A stretch of 64,000 nucleotides of DNA from assembly GCA_051294905.1 (NCBI GenBank), contig CM119378.1, positions 28,334,001 through 28,398,000 of the forward strand, read 5' to 3'. Source of the stretch: Botryllus schlosseri (lineage: Eukaryota). The position numbers and the translations under genes were made by a program. Shown here piece by piece: positions 21,921 through 64,000 of this stretch. Under the pieces are notes generated by a model. The model did no database searches and had not been told where the DNA came from. It saw only the letters and a list, made by a program, of their open reading frames with translations. Every line of letters begins with the position of its first letter. Position 1 is the stretch's first letter.

Positions 21921-23310
21921 CAGTGTTGGGATCAAGTCACTACCTTCGAGTCACAGGTCATCTTGAGTCATTGCAGATTTGGAGTCGAATCGAGTCACGT
22001 CACGTCACGTCATAAAGTCAAATTGAATTTTCGAAGTACGGTATGAGTGATGATTCAAAGTCATTACATTTGCTAGCTATGCTAGACATGCTAGTATGCT
22101 AGACAGCGATGCTAGTATGATAGACGGATTAATTAATCATTTATCTTAATCAAATAACAAATAGGCTACCGTATCTAGTTAAATATACATGCGAAAAGAA
22201 GGTGTATCCCTCACGCACACGTAGAACTGCTAATAAAGTACGTGAGTAACTGTACACAGCTACATACTACAGCCTACAGCCTACACTACCCATCTACACC
22301 TCTGTGAGAATATAAATGCACACAATATATTCGTTTGATTTACACAAGAGGATTGGTAAATGTGAGCACTGGGCAACGTAAGCATTGAGCCGTCTAAGAA
22401 ACAGAGACAAATTGCAATTTAGAATAATTTATTACTTTGCGGTCAATTTATTTGTGATCTAACAATTGAGGAACCTTGTAACATACAATCACTGAATGAC
22501 TGGTGGGTTGTTCCCACAAAATCCACCGGCGTATCTCGAATAATCCGAACATACACAAGATACAGTGATTTATTCGACACCGCTTATTTAATTTAATGAC
22601 TTGAAATTGACTCGTAAATTTTGCTCCGAGTCACGAGTCAATGCACATTTTTGAAGCTCCGAGTCGAGTCGAGTCGAGTCGAGTCGAGTCGAGTCGAGTC
22701 GAGTCGAGTCGAGTCGAGTCGAGTCGAGTCGAGTCGAGTCGAGTCGAGTCGAGTCGAGTCGAGTCGAGTCGAGTCGAGTCGAGTCGAGTCGAGTCGAGTC
22801 GAGTCGAGTCGAGTCGAGTCGAGTCGAGTCGAGTCGAGTCTAGTCTAGTCAAGTCAAGTCAAGTCAAGTCAAGTCAAGTCAAGTCAAGTCAAGTCAAGTC
22901 AAGTCAAGTCAAGTCAAGTCAAGTCAAGTCAAGTCAAGTCAAGTCAAGTCAAGTCAAGTCAAGTCAAGTCAAGTCAAGTCAAGTCAAGTCAAGTCAAGTC
23001 AAGTCAAGTCAAGTCAAGTCAAGTCAAGTCAAGTCAAGTCAAGTCAAGTCAAGTCAAGTCAAGTCAAGTCAAGTCAAGTCAAGTCAAGTCAAGTCAAGTC
23101 AAGTCAAGTCAAGTCAAGTCAAGTCAAGTCAAGTCAAGTCAAGTCAAGTCAAGTCAAGTCAAGTCAAATAAAATCAAGTCAAGTCATTTTTCCAAAGTGA
23201 CTCGAGTCAAGTCAAGTCAAGTCAAGTCATACGAGAAAGTTGACTCGAGTCGAGTCAAGTCGAGTCAAGTCAAGTCAAGTCAAGTCATGACTCGAGTCAT
23301 CCCAACACTA
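21921..23310. mobile_element. CAGTGTTGGG-type hAT-like element with an expanded subterminal microsatellite
   Basis: Ends CAGTGTTGGGAT / ATCCCAACACTA; flanks ACCTAATG / GCCTACTG (6/8). Confidence 0.65.
22661..23165. repeat. Compound pentanucleotide microsatellite (GAGTC)36(TAGTC)2(AAGTC)63
   Basis: Counted from the sequence. Confidence 0.97.
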
Positions 23311-24671: not shown

Positions 24672-24756
24672 TTGGGTTGGGTTGGGTTGGGTTGGGTTGG
24701 GTTGGGTTGGGTTGGGTTGGGTTGGGTTGGGTTGCGTTGCGTTGCGTTGTGTTGTG
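24672..24756. repeat. (TTGGG)12(TTGCG)3(TTGTG)2 microsatellite
   Basis: Counted from the sequence. Confidence 0.95.
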
Positions 24757-25272
24757 TTTCAAGATCTCGAATCACATTTATAGATTACTCCCGGCAATGA
24801 GACAAAATCAGGCTACTTTTACTGGACAATGACCAATAACAATAATACTAATCGAATATGCATATATAATATTACAGCATTTCTATTTCTAAGCAATTTA
24901 CAAAATATGTTGGCATAAATTGATAATAACTTCCAGTTAATAACACCAATTTCCGCTACCGGTAGGCCTACTACAAATTCCTAGATCGTGAATACCAACA
25001 AATTCCACTGGAATACCGTACAGTGAATCGAGTTATCGAAGCATGTCCTTTGGTTGAAATATTTTATTTACCATAATAAATACGTTCAATACAGTATGCC
25101 ATGCATGTAATCCCTTTACATTCACAGGCAGGCGAGCAACCAATAAGCTTGAGGTCAAGTTATCAATTCTAGGTCTACATACCCTAGCCTGCACAGCAGT
25201 AAAAACGCAAACAAAGGCTATTTGTGAGTTGTGACTACTGACTACTACTGCTAGCTAGCGAACTTACTTACT

Positions 25273-29173: not shown

Positions 29174-29245
29174 ATTCATCGGAGTATTTGGTTGTTATAA
29201 GGTTTGTATGCTTTTTCTTCTCTCGTTTGCCGAGTGCGCTCGGCT
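29174..29245 (+). ncRNA. Putative spliced-leader (SL) RNA gene, unit 1 (leader exon about 29174-29201, donor GT 29202)
   Basis: ATTCATCGGAGTATTTGGTTGTTATAAG|GTTTGT, then a U-tract and the perfect hairpin GCCGAG-TGCG-CTCGGC (29229-44). Resembles tunicate SL exons as I recall them (unverified). The 5' and 3' ends are uncertain. Confidence 0.65.
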
Positions 29246-52405: not shown

Positions 52406-52477
52406 ATTCATCGGAGTATTTGGTTGTTATAAGGTTTGTATGCTTTTTCTTCTCTCGTTTGCCGAGTGCGCTCGGCT
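52406..52477 (+). ncRNA. Putative SL RNA gene, unit 5
   Basis: Same sequence as 29174-29245. Confidence 0.65.
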
Positions 52478-57224: not shown

Positions 57225-58214
57225 GCGCATCGCAAAAGCCTTCATCATCACAAACGGCACTTTTCAGTGCCACCCGATCGAGCAGGTTTTATGAAATTGT
57301 ATACACACTTACATGTCATTGCGCGCGCAGTATATTCATAAGACTGAGACTCGAGCGAGCCTAGAGTAGAGCGTTTTTAAAGCAATACTTGTATGGTTAC
57401 GGCGATGTACATTGTCGAACAATTTTGATTTGGAATTGAATAGAATAGTGTTTACGGTGGCCAACTAGAATTAGACGCGCTCGACGGGTGGCGGGCGGTA
57501 CGGCGGCGGCGCCGCCTTGATTGCTCAGCGGGTTTCTGTCACCGTTATTGCTTGCAAACGACTTGCTGAGGCGAGCGACGCAATACACAATTCCCAATAC
57601 AGAAGCCGGTCTGCCTGATGCGTGAATCAAAAAAGGCTGAGCGCACTCAGCCGCCTCTGTCAAGAGATACGTACCTTCAAATACAACCAAATACTCCAAT
57701 GTCTGGTTCGTACGGAGCAGGGGCGTACTAGTACTTGGAGAGTCGTAAGTACTGGTGCGGGTAGAAAGGATCTCGTCTGTTACGTCTTACAGTTGGGACT
57801 TGCCGTCGCTTGGAATTTTGTTGCTCGGCACAATTCCGTTGTTCGCGCAAAGTTACAGTGTAAGTGTCGAGGTTCGGGTTCGACACGATTGGATAGTATT
57901 TACGGATGGATTGGCTGGAACAAAAGAAAACACATTTTCTGCATATCGAAAAAATGCTAACCCGTTGGCGCCCGCCCGACGAATGAGATCGTCCGATGCT
58001 ACAGTCACAGTGCTACATCACAGAACGACACTCGGTGTGGTATCGCCGACTACCTAAGCCTGTCGAAGCACGTATATATTACACTGTCGCTCGTGCAAGC
58101 AAAGGTTGGCAAAGCCGGAATTGCACCGAATTTCAAGCGACGGGCGGTCGTTTTTAGACAGGCGCGAGTGCTGATAATTCTCCAACTCCTAGTAGTCCCC
58201 CTTGTCCGTTAAAT

Positions 58215-58245
58215 ATTCATCGGAGTATTTGGTTGTTATAAGGTT
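58215..58245 (+). ncRNA. Putative SL RNA gene, unit 6, interrupted 3 nt after the splice donor by the retrotransposon
   Basis: ...GTTGTTATAAG|GTT is followed by CGCATC instead of TGTATG. Confidence 0.65.
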
Positions 58246-58509
58246 CGCATCTCTGGCGTTTTGGTTGTAAAAAGGTAGAAACTCTGCTGAGGCAGGTGTC
58301 TTTTAGAATATTCATTTCAGAATCTAGTTACTAACCTTGGTTTCACCGCTGTGGTGAACGCTGATAGAACTAGAGTAGACAAGACGTGATTTTTCATAGG
58401 AATAAATTTTATTTGGCTGTGAGACGTACCGACTTAAACTTAACGGAAAACGATTCGCCAAACACAGCGTCGCTTCGGTGGCTGTGCTTTTCCGGCTTAA
58501 ACACTGAAA

Positions 58510-59065
58510 CTCACGTACGTGAGATAAACTGCTACACCTTACGACGTAAGGAAACTTCATTAACACTTACCTGGAGAGCCTTGGCTTTCCATCTTCTCAA
58601 CGATTCGGCTTTACAGCAGTGTACTTAGCGAAAGAAACATTCGCCTTCGGTTCCTACAACAAAATTAGCACAGATATTCAAATACGCTTCACGCGATACA
58701 TATGAACACAGCCTCGCGATACAGATTGTGATATTCGACGCAAATACCGGTACTCACGCAAGTGAGCAAACTGCAGCACCTTACAACGTAAGGAAACAAC
58801 ATTAACACCTACCTGGAGAGCCTAGGCTTTCCATCTTCACACCGATTCGACCTTGCAGCAGTGTACATAACGAAGAAAACATTCGCCTTCGGTTCCTGAA
58901 ACAAAATTAGCACAGAAAATCAAATACGCTTCACGCGATAAATCTGAACACAACCTCGCGGTACAGACTGCGGTTTTCGACGTAAATACCGGTACTCACG
59001 CAAGTGAGCAAACTGCAGCACCTTACAACGTAAGGATACAACAGTAACACTTACGGTGAGGCTTT
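58510..59065 (+). repeat. About 242-bp tandem monomers (2.3 copies) in the retrotransposon 5' UTR
   Basis: CTCACG anchors at 58510, 58753 and 58995; shared AAACATTCGCCTTCGGTTCCT, CAAAATTAGCACAGA and CAAATACGCTTCACGCGATA blocks. Confidence 0.92.
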
Positions 59066-59185
59066 GCCTTTTTGTCTTCACTCGTTCTTGGTCCTGCGGC
59101 GGTGCGTGGAGCGGGGGAGACAGTCGACTTCAGATCCTGAAATAAAAACATTACAGAAAACAAAGTCAAAAAAGATTGAAATAAA

Positions 59186-60340
59186 ATGGATTCTCAAGGA
59201 GTTCATGGCCACAGGCCACAATCAGTGAATCTCAAAGGAGACCAAAACATAACATTGATGGAGGTCTTACAAATATTTGAAAAAAAACCGGCACTGGTGC
59301 AGTACCGTGAGAAACTGGAAGCAGTGTTCCAAATAGCACAGGACACTTTCAACGTCACATTGACGGATGAAAAGACAAGAAATGACTTACTAAAAGAAGA
59401 AAACGACATTGTTTACCAAGGCAAGAGATACCTGTTATCACTGCCGGGTACAATGCCAACTGTAATAAACATTCGTGCCGTGCCGTCAGAGGCAAGTAAC
59501 GAATCTGTAGCAAGAGCTATAGAAAGTTGGAAGGCAGGGCGTGTCGTGGGCGTGCGCAAGCAATTTCACAGAGGACTTAACCTCCACAATGGCTATCGTA
59601 CGGTAGCAGTGGCGGACTATCAAAAAGGAAAATTACCACCCTTCATAAGAATTGAAGGAGCGTCTTGCAAGGTATACACACCTACAATCGAAAGACCGAT
59701 AGTAATAGAAAGACTCTGTTTTAAATGTAACAAGTCAGGACATCTGGCGGCCAAATGCAGATCACCCTACTGCAGCCATTGCAACAAAAGCGGTCACAAC
59801 AGACAAGAGTGCCAAGCACTGGAAAATGATTACCCAGCTCTCATGAGTGGGAGAAATGTAAATGAAACAGAGAATAATAATAAAAACGAAGAAATGGTGG
59901 AACTCACTAGTGAAGAACCACAGAACGAAGTACAGAACACGGAAATAATAATAAACGAATCGGTACCGGTAACGGTACAAAGTGAGGAGAAAAGCAACCA
60001 GAACGAATCGGTTCTAGTTGAAGACTTGAACATCTCCACCTCCGATTCAGAAACAGAGAAGGAGGTGAAAGGAAAACAAACAACACCAGAAAGTGATGAT
60101 GATACAATCACCAATGGTGAAGAATCAGAAATTGAAGAACAATCAGAATCAGAAGCCGAGGAACAGGACTCGGAGAAAACTGCTCCTCCACCTCTCAATC
60201 AGAGACAGGCGGAATTTACACTAGTAAAAGCGAATAAAAAGAGAAGACGATCAGCGAATGATCGCAGGAAAAGCAATGAAAAGAAAAGAAATGCCATTGA
60301 TCTTGAAGCAAATAGAAACCGCTTTAGCCCATTACAATGA
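59186..60340 (+). CDS. ORF1 gag-like nucleic-acid-binding protein, 384 aa
   Basis: CFKCNKSGHLAAKC and CSHCNKSGHNRQEC (CX2CX4HX4C), then an acidic tract and a basic KKRRR segment. Confidence 0.93.
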   Translation: MDSQGVHGHRPQSVNLKGDQNITLMEVLQIFEKKPALVQYREKLEAVFQIAQDTFNVTLTDEKTRNDLLKEENDIVYQGKRYLLSLPGTMPTVINIRAVPSEASNESVARAIESWKAGRVVGVRKQFHRGLNLHNGYRTVAVADYQKGKLPPFIRIEGASCKVYTPTIERPIVIERLCFKCNKSGHLAAKCRSPYCSHCNKSGHNRQECQALENDYPALMSGRNVNETENNNKNEEMVELTSEEPQNEVQNTEIIINESVPVTVQSEEKSNQNESVLVEDLNISTSDSETEKEVKGKQTTPESDDDTITNGEESEIEEQSESEAEEQDSEKTAPPPLNQRQAEFTLVKANKKRRRSANDRRKSNEKKRNAIDLEANRNRFSPLQ

Positions 60341-63300
60341 CTATCAAGATCACTTCCCTCAATATCAACGGTTTTAACAGAAAATGGAACGAAATAGAAA
60401 AGATGATTCGAAAGTATAAAAGCGATGTGTACTGTCTACAAGAAGTGCACAGAGTTAACAAAACAAAATTGAATGAGTGGTGCAGAGACAACGAATATGT
60501 GAACTTTCCAAACTGCCTAGATATGAATGATGCCTGGACAGACGACCAAGGCCAAAAAATATCCTATTGGCAAGGTACCTTAATGATAATAAAATCGAAT
60601 CTGAAAAATCTATACGACATTCAAGAAGAAACAGTAATTGAACACAGAGCCCAGAGAATTAAATTGGCTAAACAAAATGAGATAACAGAAATCTGGAACA
60701 TTTACGCCCCTGCAACGGTGGCTAGACATCAAACAGAATACTATAAAAATCTTACTCAGGCATTGAAAAATGCAGGGGACAGAACAATCATTATAGGAGA
60801 TTTTAATATCATTATAGACAAGAATGATGCAAAAATCAACACAAACTACAAGAACACACCCGCTGCGGATATATGGAAATGGTTCGTTGACACCAACGGC
60901 TACCAGGATATATATAGGTGGAGAAACCCACACAAAAAACTGTTTACAAGGAAAACAGGGCAACAGGAAAGACGCATAGACAATGCCTTTGCATCAGATG
61001 TTTTGGCAAAGGATGTTAGCAGATGTATATATAAAATAAATCCAATATCGGATCACATATATCTATTGGAAACAACTATTACAAATTACAACAGTAATAA
61101 ATGGGGAAGAGGAATATGGAAATGTAATGCGGACTTATTAGAAAATAAAATGATGAAAGAAAACATAAATATGATAATAGACAACATGAAAGCAAATAAA
61201 CATGGGTACAATCACATCACTACGTGGTGGGATACTCTCAAGAAAAAAATCAAAAGTGCCATACAAGCGTTTGAAAAAACCCATGGCAAAAAAGAGAAAG
61301 ACAGAATTAAGAAAATAACAGAAGAGATTGAGATGCTACAAAGTACTAACGATAGTATCAAAAAGACTCTTCTGCAAAACGAGCTAAAAAGCATTGAAAG
61401 GAAAAGGATAGACTTCACCTCCAAGAAAGCAAAAATCAGGGATAAAGAGGAAGGAGAAAAACCTACCAAATACTTCTTTGATATGTTAAAAAGGAGGAAA
61501 GCCATCCAAACAATGAACGTATTAAAGAATAATAATGGAGAAGACATCATGGATTCTGAACAGATAATCGATCAAATCGAAAATTATTATCAGAATCTAT
61601 GGCAGGCCCATCCCAACATAGATGACAAGAAACAGAAAAGGTATCTAGACCAACTAGATGACACTGAGCTGTCAGAAGAAGATCATACGTTTCTTGAGAT
61701 ACCGATTTCTGTAGATGAAATCAAAATCATAATCCAAGCAATGAATAATGACAAAACTCCCGGTAACGACGGCTTACCGAAAAGGTTTTACATCATTTAC
61801 TGGAACAAAATTAAAGATCAGTTGGTAGAGCTTTTCAATAACGCGCTTTTCCTGGGGGATATATGCCAATCTTGGAATACAGGTGTAGTCCAATTGATTT
61901 ATAAAAAAGGAGATGCTAAACTGCTCAAGAATTGGAGACCTATAACGTTACTTAATTTAGATTATAAAATACTCACCTCGATCATTTCGAATAGGCTAAA
62001 AGCAGTTACTGGTAAATTAATATTAAACACGCAAAAATGCGGGATAGCAAATCGGCAGATAACGGACAATCTAAGAAACATAAAAGCGGCGTGGGACTAT
62101 GCCCACAGAAAGAATATTGATCTAATCGTGGTGTCGATAGACCAAGAGAAAGCTTTCGACAGAGTTCATCATGGCTATCTAAACAAGATACTAGATAGTT
62201 ATGCAGTACCGTACAACATCCGAAGACTAATAAAGAAAGTGTATGATAACTCATACAGTCAAATATTGGTCAACGGGACATTATCAAATAAAATAAAGAT
62301 AGGCAGAGGACTCCGCCAAGGATGTCCATTAAGCATGTGTCTGTATGCGATGACCGCTGACCCACTAGCTAGAAAAATAATGGAAAATGAGAAAATAAAT
62401 GGAATAAAAATAGGAAAGCAAGAGCTGAGACTGCAGCAATACGCTGATGATCTCACGGCGATTCTTATAGATCATCTTTCGGTAAAGCAACTATTTGGCG
62501 AGCTACAACTCTTCGCAGAGGCAACAGGCCAAATTGTCAACAAAGATAAAACTGAAATTTTATGCACAAAACCAAACACAACAAATCTCGGAGATTTTAG
62601 AAAGTATTTGAAAACATCAACGGAAATATTAGGCCAAACATTCGGTATCAATTACCTCAATAAAACATGGAAGAAACGAAGCGAACAAATTAGAAAAATA
62701 ACAATGGCATACAAAGACAGAGAACTGACCTGGTATGGTAAATCAACCATACTGAGTAGCATGGCCTCAACGAAGATCGTTTATAATGCCAGGATAGTTG
62801 ACGTTCCTGTAAAAACAAGAAAGAACTTGGAGGCTCAGTTCTTTCACTTCATATGGAGCCCAGAGAAGCTGGAGCCGATTAACAGGTCCCATATGACCTC
62901 CAGCGAACTTATGGGAGACCTAAAAATCACCTGCATTAAGAGTAAAATTGATGCATGCAAACTAGAAAAATATCAAATATTGAAAATCATTACAGAGCCA
63001 GAAGAATTCTGGCACTGGGAGGCAATCTTTGTGTTAGGCACAAAGATAAATAGAATTAACAAAAGGCTATATACAAATTCATTCCCACATAGTGACAAAC
63101 TCACAAAAGAGTGGGATTATATAATAAAGAGAGCAGAGGCTCTGAAATGGACGGACGAGATATGGGCAGAGGCGTCCCATAAGGACATCTACCTGGGGAT
63201 AAAAGATCAGGATAAACCCCAAATCAAGAACATTTCGTTAAATTCCAGACAGCCAGTGAACTGGAAAGAAGTCACGACACTGAACGGTCGCGATAACAAA

Positions 63301-63795
63301 TTAATGAACGAAGAAAGAATCGTCAACTTAAGAACGGCTCTTGGAGGATATTTCCTCGGAGACGACAAGAAAAGATTGAACATAATGAATATTGGTTCGC
63401 AAAAAAACATGAACACGTGTTGTAAACTTTGTGAGTCGAAGAAGGACAATCTAGAACATCTCCTTATAGATTGCAATTTTATCAGACGGATCTTTGCAAA
63501 CTTCAGAGGAGTAATGAAGCAGAGAAATCTCAACAGAGATCACATCTTCTTCAATCACGGTATAAAATGCGCAACCGACTGGACCATAATCAGTATAATT
63601 AAAAGAAAGATAATCATGCAAAAATTCATCCAAGAAAAGAAGAACGAAAAAATACATGACCAAAAATCAGCAATCAAATTGATGACAAAGAAAATTATAA
63701 AGAAACTGATAAAAAGAATCTCTTTCTTCAAAGACACAACAGAACAGCAGCTTTTCAGAAATGAGCTGCTGTTTGTGGAGGCGGAAAACACATGA
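60337..63795 (+). CDS. ORF2 APE endonuclease / reverse transcriptase, 1152 aa
   Basis: APE motifs SLNING, CLQE, NIYAP, GDFN, RIDN, SDH; Tx1/L1-type GRGIWKCN and GEKPTKYFF; RT motifs KTPGNDG, WRPITLLNLDYKIL, DQEKAFDRV, GLRQGCPLS, YADD; C-terminal CKLC...HLLIDC. Confidence 0.97.
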   Translation: MTIKITSLNINGFNRKWNEIEKMIRKYKSDVYCLQEVHRVNKTKLNEWCRDNEYVNFPNCLDMNDAWTDDQGQKISYWQGTLMIIKSNLKNLYDIQEETVIEHRAQRIKLAKQNEITEIWNIYAPATVARHQTEYYKNLTQALKNAGDRTIIIGDFNIIIDKNDAKINTNYKNTPAADIWKWFVDTNGYQDIYRWRNPHKKLFTRKTGQQERRIDNAFASDVLAKDVSRCIYKINPISDHIYLLETTITNYNSNKWGRGIWKCNADLLENKMMKENINMIIDNMKANKHGYNHITTWWDTLKKKIKSAIQAFEKTHGKKEKDRIKKITEEIEMLQSTNDSIKKTLLQNELKSIERKRIDFTSKKAKIRDKEEGEKPTKYFFDMLKRRKAIQTMNVLKNNNGEDIMDSEQIIDQIENYYQNLWQAHPNIDDKKQKRYLDQLDDTELSEEDHTFLEIPISVDEIKIIIQAMNNDKTPGNDGLPKRFYIIYWNKIKDQLVELFNNALFLGDICQSWNTGVVQLIYKKGDAKLLKNWRPITLLNLDYKILTSIISNRLKAVTGKLILNTQKCGIANRQITDNLRNIKAAWDYAHRKNIDLIVVSIDQEKAFDRVHHGYLNKILDSYAVPYNIRRLIKKVYDNSYSQILVNGTLSNKIKIGRGLRQGCPLSMCLYAMTADPLARKIMENEKINGIKIGKQELRLQQYADDLTAILIDHLSVKQLFGELQLFAEATGQIVNKDKTEILCTKPNTTNLGDFRKYLKTSTEILGQTFGINYLNKTWKKRSEQIRKITMAYKDRELTWYGKSTILSSMASTKIVYNARIVDVPVKTRKNLEAQFFHFIWSPEKLEPINRSHMTSSELMGDLKITCIKSKIDACKLEKYQILKIITEPEEFWHWEAIFVLGTKINRINKRLYTNSFPHSDKLTKEWDYIIKRAEALKWTDEIWAEASHKDIYLGIKDQDKPQIKNISLNSRQPVNWKEVTTLNGRDNKLMNEERIVNLRTALGGYFLGDDKKRLNIMNIGSQKNMNTCCKLCESKKDNLEHLLIDCNFIRRIFANFRGVMKQRNLNRDHIFFNHGIKCATDWTIISIIKRKIIMQKFIQEKKNEKIHDQKSAIKLMTKKIIKKLIKRISFFKDTTEQQLFRNELLFVEAENT

Positions 63796-64000
63796 AATGG
63801 AGAACATGTACATACCTGATACTGGAGAAGGAAATCAAGGAAAGAGGACGATCCGATCGCCGGAGACGGAGAATGCGAACTGTGACGGGCCGGCCGACGA
63901 CGATGGAGGAGAGCGATGCCGACGGAGGATGATGCTGAAAACGAAAAGAGAATGATGAAATGGATCCTGGACCACAAAGAAATGCATTGTGTGGGTATGA

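Follow-up and report, generated by a model that had tools for sequence, protein, structure and literature searches.

The question raised by this locus is whether an intact retrotransposon lying within three nucleotides of the splice donor of a spliced leader (SL)-like gene came there by choice of that site. The window, as we call the whole 64,000-nt stretch of the Botryllus schlosseri genome that was analysed (C8:28334001-28398000), is filled from ~28.5 kb onward by a tandem histone repeat with a 5808-bp unit carrying the genes H1, H4, H3, H2B and H2A. The element sits in the sixth unit and is a full-length, autonomous-looking long interspersed nuclear element (LINE) of the L1/Tx1 group with an apurinic/apyrimidinic endonuclease (APE). 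From its junctions, from the neighbouring empty units and from its relatives in the 495.5-Mb assembly, over which genome-wide counts were taken, we judge it very probable that SL RNA genes are a sequence-specific target of this lineage, with integration at their exon/intron boundary.

A filled unit among identical empty ones

Each histone unit contains one leader-like gene, composed of a CTAGTAGTC motif, a ATCGGAGTATTTGGTTGTTATAAG exon and then GTTTGTATGC; a second, diverged leader-like copy is placed head-to-head with it. The parts of this gene that matter at the insertion, with an empty site for comparison, are:

58189-58197, + strand: promoter-proximal motif CTAGTAGTC of the SL-like gene, ~22-30 nt 5' of the putative leader start
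58219-58242, + strand: variant spliced-leader exon ATCGGAGTATTTGGTTGTTATAAG, 24 nt, with 3 substitutions relative to the canonical ATTGGAGTATTTGGTTGTATTAAG
58243-58245, + strand: donor GT plus T; the TT at 58244-58245 recurs after the poly-A, so that the target-site duplication is 2 bp at most
52407-52450, + strand: empty target site given as an example; identical sequence is found at 29175, 34983, 40791 and 46599, and again in 3 later units beyond the window

The canonical ATTGGAGTATTTGGTTGTATTAAG is the published 25-nt chordate spliced leader minus its first G (PMC3795323, Table 1). It is joined to an GTAAGCATCGG intron at 73 dispersed, intact exon-intron junctions genome-wide, and 39 exact canonical SL genes are present. 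The CTAGTAGTC motif is a candidate promoter element of the SL-like gene, and a ACTAGTAGTC motif is also found at equal distance 5' of the canonical SL exon on C14. A search of Rfam at gathering threshold gave no match anywhere in the window.

Six copies of the motif TTCATCGGAGTATTTGGTTGTTATAAGGT lie in the window (29175, 34983, 40791, 46599, 52407 and 58216; none would be expected by chance), spaced 5808/5809 bp apart. Copies 1-5 go on as TTGTATGCTTTTTC, whereas unit 6 runs through ...TTATAAGGTT to 58245 and switches at 58246 to CGCATCTC, confirming the break described in an earlier annotation made from the sequence alone (hereafter the first-pass annotation). That annotation also proposed extracting the sequence downstream to see how the element ends. 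On the continuation of the same contig, a run of A14 is followed by TTTGTATGCTTTTTC, the exact resumption of the histone unit, and the 3.8 kb past the 3' junction is 100% identical to that unit. The filled site reads AAGGTT/CGC... at its 5' end and ...A14/TTTGTATGC at its 3' end, while the empty site reads AAGGTTTGTATGC. The target has lost no base and gained at most TT. The site is empty in the five units upstream and the three units downstream of unit 6, all otherwise 100% identical, and the histone-repeat copy is in this respect a natural experiment in which identical empty and filled units fix the junctions to the base.

Because the histone unit resumes exactly after A14, the element is 5,910 bp in length, from 58246 to window-equivalent 64155, with its 3' end ~155 nt outside the window. 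It has two open reading frames (ORFs) between 5' and 3' untranslated regions (UTRs), and ORF2 combines the APE with a reverse transcriptase (RT):

58246-59185, + strand: 5'UTR, 940 nt, whose 5' terminus CGCATCTC is common to relatives
58254-58277, + strand: degenerate internal leader plus donor (TGGCGTTTTGGTTGTAAAAAG/GTA), in an insert of ~30 nt that relatives are without
58509-59054, + strand: 242-bp tandem monomers in the 5'UTR, 2.3 copies, 88% alike
59186-60340, + strand: ORF1, 384 aa, with one CCHC zinc knuckle (Pfam)
60337-63795, + strand: ORF2, 1152 aa, open, overlapping ORF1 by ATGA
~60355-61056, + strand: APE endonuclease of ORF2 (Pfam Exo_endo_phos, residues 7-240)
~61903-62592, + strand: RT of ORF2 (Pfam RVT_1, residues 523-752)
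~63421-63474, + strand: C-terminal Cys/His motif of ORF2 (C1029, C1032, H1041, C1046)
63796-64000, + strand: 3'UTR, running on for ~155 nt past the window to a terminal hairpin and A14 at window-equivalent 64155

The open ORFs and their Pfam domains agree with the first-pass description of an intact two-ORF element with APE and RT, in gene orientation and 2-3 nt past a leader-like donor. The zf-CCHC match of ORF1 has an E value of 5.6e-4, just under the Pfam cutoff, and the four Cys/His residues of ORF2 are kept in at least 90% of 63 homologues. Residues 3-861 of ORF2, from the APE through the RT, align with human L1 ORF2p in the PDB (E 1e-59). In a Foldseek search of Swiss-Prot with the predicted ORF2 model (predicted local distance difference test, pLDDT, 87.8), Tx1 (P14381) was the top match with E 1.4e-61, a template modelling (TM) score of 0.74 and 18% identity, followed by the L1 ORF2 proteins of mouse, loris and human (E 4e-59 to 2e-56; mouse L1 4.2e-59 with 20% identity). 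TM scores across the Tx1 and L1 matches were 0.67-0.74. Jockey, R1 and R2 were far behind (R1 at E about 1e-29), and SLACS, at rank 15, matched the RT part only (residues 454-1067, E 2.5e-14). The element is an APE-type retrotransposon without long terminal repeats (non-LTR), of the L1/Tx1 group, and the earlier statement that it carries an APE and not a restriction-like endonuclease holds on the Pfam domains, the L1 ORF2p alignment and the restriction of the SLACS match to the RT. Its Tx1-type label agrees with the top structural match; we do not choose between Tx1 and L1 on structure, because the Tx1 match is only marginally above those to L1. From the behaviour of the element, Tx1 membership is likely, and the Tx1-type features of a CCHC ORF1 and a C-terminal Cys/His motif in ORF2 are both present.

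The closest database protein (P0001) is only 40% identical, and its 5.5-kb contig stops at the poly-A, without flanks. In the genome no other member of the subfamily is open besides the window copy; the copies that come next are 84% and 82% identical and carry stops or truncations. Open ORF2s at 55%, 49% and 36-41% identity are numerous (2438 first-look candidates). One small contig (C205:1-13451) is built from a 55%-related element with an open ORF2, repeated head to tail at a period of 5686 bp, each copy joined to the next through poly-A, T and AGCATCTC. A terminal hairpin, GG-A-UCGC[UGCG]GCGA-CC, stands directly 5' of the poly-A (window-equivalent ~64123-64139) and is shared by 21 related tails. 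Two pairs of its stem show covariation from one lineage to another (CG/GC to GC/AU), 97.7% of cells are paired, and none of 500 shuffles matched this; the hairpin is probably the recognition element of the RT.

Insertions at SL genes across the genome

To place the window copy among its relatives, we searched the genome for the 3' tail motif (AATAAAATTGGGAT-stem-TGCG-stem-ACCGAAAA), which gave 26 matches and 24 distinct flanks. Six flanks have TAAGCATCGG... after the poly-A, where the canonical SL intron sets in at its base +2; the window copy supplies one more; and in three the poly-A leads to T and on into a further element at its 5' end. After the poly-A, the first non-A base is T in 16 of the 24. 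At the 5' side, where copies were collected with a gapped pattern since a strict one missed most of them, 12 distinct ends were obtained: three lie behind a leader plus GTN (GTT or GTA), eight lie behind the poly-A of another LINE, in many cases one from a different tail family, and a remnant reading GGTA, GTA or T, and one is unrelated. In published work, elements have been called target-specific when more than 20% of flanks share the same sequence (PMC4494074); here the SL donor site accounts for at least 10 of the 24 3' flanks and for 11 of the 12 5' flanks.

An array on C14 shows the arrangement at a canonical gene. There, a promoter motif, the canonical leader and GTA are followed by an element truncated at its 5' end, then by poly-A and T, then by a full-length element whose ORF2 is open, poly-A and the TAAGCATCGG intron; taking the elements out restores an SL gene in which TA is duplicated. 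Genome-wide, 13 poly-A/TAAGCAT junctions stand against the 73 intact canonical exon-intron junctions, so that ~13 of 86 are filled, a proportion that bears on the upkeep of functional tunicate SL genes. At three loci the first poly-A/TAAGCAT junction has a second one ~418 nt behind it (C14:22299663 and C14:22300081, for example). This spacing equals ~243 nt of the conserved 3' part of the SL gene plus an insert of ~175 nt, poly-A-tailed and in the same place, which may be a short non-autonomous rider.

The lineage flanks, the C14 array and the 13 filled junctions bear out the site specificity that the first-pass annotation had proposed from one insertion. Its identification of the target as the SL gene needs qualifying: the lineage does sit at canonical SL genes, but the gene struck in the window encodes a leader with three substitutions and not the canonical one. 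The geometry in the histone variant (AAGG/TT/TG) is base-for-base homologous to the canonical one (AAGG/TA/AG), and the window copy appears to be inserted into a diverged leader gene of the histone repeat at the homologous position. The histone target combines the same exon end, which is common to all targets, with a different intron, and this constrains the bases that could be recognised.

From the junction sequences we infer the nick positions of a possible insertion mechanism. The endonuclease would nick the bottom strand opposite the boundary between intron +1 G and +2 T (top strand AAGG/T), and the poly-A tail of the element RNA would be reverse-transcribed from this nick. A top-strand cut 2 nt further downstream would produce the 2-bp duplication, TA in canonical genes and TT in the window copy. 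Since the leader exon is left intact 5' of each insertion, the same site can be targeted again, and repeat targeting would explain the head-to-tail arrays of several LINE families between leader exon and intron. The 5' ends of the elements, (T)CGCATC or AGCATC, resemble SL intron +3 to +9 (AAGCATC) in the window copy (58246-58253) and in relatives, so a filled site still looks like the target on both sides.

Transcription of the element and competing explanations

The element lies directly behind the promoter motif and leader of the leader-like gene with the GT donor kept, and co-transcription from the SL promoter is plausible. It might instead be expressed from an internal promoter in the 242-bp monomers, in the manner of mouse L1, its place behind the leader being a by-product of targeting. 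Between the two the balance is roughly even, and we put the internal promoter just short of an even chance. The 940-nt 5'UTR with its tandem monomers, which may act as a promoter and which are likewise repeated in relatives on C1 and C7, argues for internal initiation, as does the fact that small nuclear RNA (snRNA)-type promoters are generally poor producers of long polyadenylated RNAs. Several copies argue the other way. On C1 and C13, copies without an SL promoter upstream begin exactly with position 1 of the leader and still carry GTA or GTT ahead of the element; a contig from another sample (X5) has a 99.7%-identical element 5' end behind ATT+GGAG...TTATAAGGTT in a non-histone upstream context; and the window copy has a fossil leader plus GTA inside its own 5'UTR. 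All of these fit RNAs initiated where SL transcripts start and extended into the element. For the C1 copy, there is the alternative that it was inserted into a leader at the 5' end of another retroposon, and its 3' flank is found elsewhere following leader+GTAA. The fossil at 58254-58277 matches the canonical leader plus GTA at 21 of 25 positions in a local alignment, a score reached by none of 2000 shuffles, and possibly derives from template switching onto SL RNA or from an old co-transcribed leader. The element was found in no indexed RNA run, and 0 reads were obtained from a bulk RNA run (X23) of which only ~6% was read, which is not valid as an expression test.

We consider it very unlikely that the junction is an assembly error, or that the element was brought by ectopic recombination with a filled SL gene and not by retrotransposition. 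Such an origin would be favoured by the state of the array, which is collapsed at a contig end, and by the X5 contig, in which the 99.7%-identical 5' end occurs in a different upstream context. In the assembly sample, words of the histone unit have a depth of 500-1200 and those of the 58245/58246 junction a depth of 6-12. The ratio implies an array far larger than the ~10 units assembled, very roughly 50-200, with the element in about one of them; the empty-site branch was also found. Support for the junction in reads, which the first-pass annotation had asked for from long reads, is partial, as it is at k-mer level and from the assembly sample itself, the unitigs reaching only 22-30 nt to the left of the junction. 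However, both junctions are base-exact, with a poly-A and a 2-bp duplication, the flanks on both sides are of the histone-variant type, and the junction words are at single-copy depth.

The leader could also have been added to the element RNA by trans-splicing and the capped RNA then retrotransposed, with no SL targeting needed. Hundreds of genomic leader cores do run directly into non-intron repeats, and other LINE families begin right after ...AAG(G) without GT. In the element studied here, by contrast, intron bases are kept (AAG/GTT in the window copy, GTA in its relatives), the upstream sequence is a complete histone unit that includes the promoter motif, and the remaining intron resumes past the poly-A; the leader is therefore not from trans-splicing, an origin to which we give almost no credence. 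An ordinary, non-specific L1-like insertion that struck a leader-like gene by chance is as remote, in spite of the unrelated 3' flanks and the usually weak specificity of enzymes of the L1 group, since 5' and 3' flanks alike recur at one 2-3-nt position in a leader of 24 nt with its donor and the inferred nick site differs from the L1 TTTT/AA type.

Four points weigh against sequence-specific integration at SL genes. About 10 of the 24 3' flanks (~40%) are unrelated sequence; these are off-target insertions or later rearrangements. Only a single filled unit is seen in the whole histone array. As the element 5' end (T)CGCATC resembles intron +4 to +9 (AGCATC), upstream and downstream recognition are inseparable. 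Finally, some targets, such as that of the C1 copy, are promoter-less leaders at the 5' ends of other retroposons, and the specificity may therefore be for the motif and not for functional SL genes.

A wider reading is that a whole chordate radiation of APE-type LINEs has specialised on the SL junction, taking the start of its own mRNA from the SL gene, rebuilding its target and extending its own arrays; we offer it tentatively and think it rather doubtful. Its members would be diverse, with ORF2s only 36-55% identical and several tail types, and the SL promoter and leader might, though we would not count on it, furnish the beginning of their mRNA with no need of trans-splicing. A 5' end that imitates the intron would rebuild the target, and could conceivably yield both the arrays and leader-headed retrocopies genome-wide; the same process may explain the leader sequences scattered over the genome. 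The leader core TATTTGGTTGTWWTAAG has 581 matches in the genome against 7 for a control, most of them preceding recurrent non-intron sequences, and these appear to be leader-headed repeats or retrocopies on all chromosomes. At C3:5093720-5093800, a 41%-related LINE stands behind poly-A, 27 nt similar to the U1 snRNA 5' end (GATACTTACCTGACGAGGCAG...), a full leader and GT, a head composed of small-RNA sequences.

Further observations concern the element and its surroundings. Public runs filed under two further organism codes (C and D) contain half of the element 31-mers (window 58246-63900), and in organism D no 5' junction region was found; possible reasons are close relatives that carry near-identical copies, mislabelling, or transfer. 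A second, unrelated 5.05-kb LINE with APE, RT and zf-RVT domains lies at C8:28407007-28412057, two units of the histone repeat downstream of the window. It is without a poly-A tail, its 3' end being ATCAAATGTA, and sits inside the N-terminal coding sequence of histone H3 with a 22-23-bp duplication. Its ~69%-identical relatives at C1:6170397 and C1:6190972 are also in the H3 5' coding region, with other copies elsewhere, and it may be an H3-preferring LINE. Just 5' of the histone repeat are (AGTCA)x124 at 22662-23287 and (TTGGG)x17 at 24672-24758 of the window.

Comparison with known target-specific elements

Among LINEs, L1 has loose TTTT/AA specificity and makes 7-20-bp duplications. The window element resembles it in the alignment of ORF2 from APE through RT and in 5'UTR tandem monomers like those of mouse L1, but its position is fixed and its duplication is 2 bp. 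R1 and R2 are, like it, site-specific LINEs in a tandem multicopy gene, with a minority of units filled, repeat targeting and possible co-transcription. They differ in target and clade, R2 having a restriction-like endonuclease and R1 being APE-type but of another group.

Target-specific APE LINEs of the Tx1 clade include Tx1L, Keno in U2 snRNA genes, Dewa in tRNA arrays, Mutsu in 5S rDNA, and Kibi and Koshi in microsatellites. The window element shares with this clade its two ORFs, CCHC ORF1, ORF2 with APE, RT and Cys/His motif, poly-A tail and multicopy small-RNA gene target. Published Tx1 family targets are U2, U5, 5S, satellites, microsatellites and transposons (PMC4494074), and SL-specific LINEs have been described as having a restriction-like endonuclease, with target-specific elements of the Tx1 and R1 clades being APE-type (PMC4640811). 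The SL exon/donor target of the window element is not among the Tx1 targets of either paper. The first-pass annotation knew of no APE-type element targeting SL genes, and our full-text literature searches, whose scope did not include Repbase, likewise found no APE-type and no tunicate SL-targeting LINE.

SL-gene-specific retrotransposons were previously known only from trypanosomatids (SLACS, CZAR, CRE1-2) and nematodes (NeSL-1), always with a restriction-like endonuclease, which lies C-terminal to the RT, and with insertion inside the leader exon. Like these, the window element occupies multicopy SL genes in gene orientation, behind the SL promoter and with leader sequence kept 5'. In contrast to them, it has an N-terminal APE in place of a restriction-like (PD-(D/E)xK) endonuclease and inserts at intron +1/+2, and the similarity is convergent. 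In our view the element is a target-specific APE LINE directed at a new target and resembles the restriction-type SL elements by convergence; if this is true, an APE-type lineage in a tunicate represents an independent solution, reached in a chordate, to living in SL genes, and adds a new target to those of APE LINEs.

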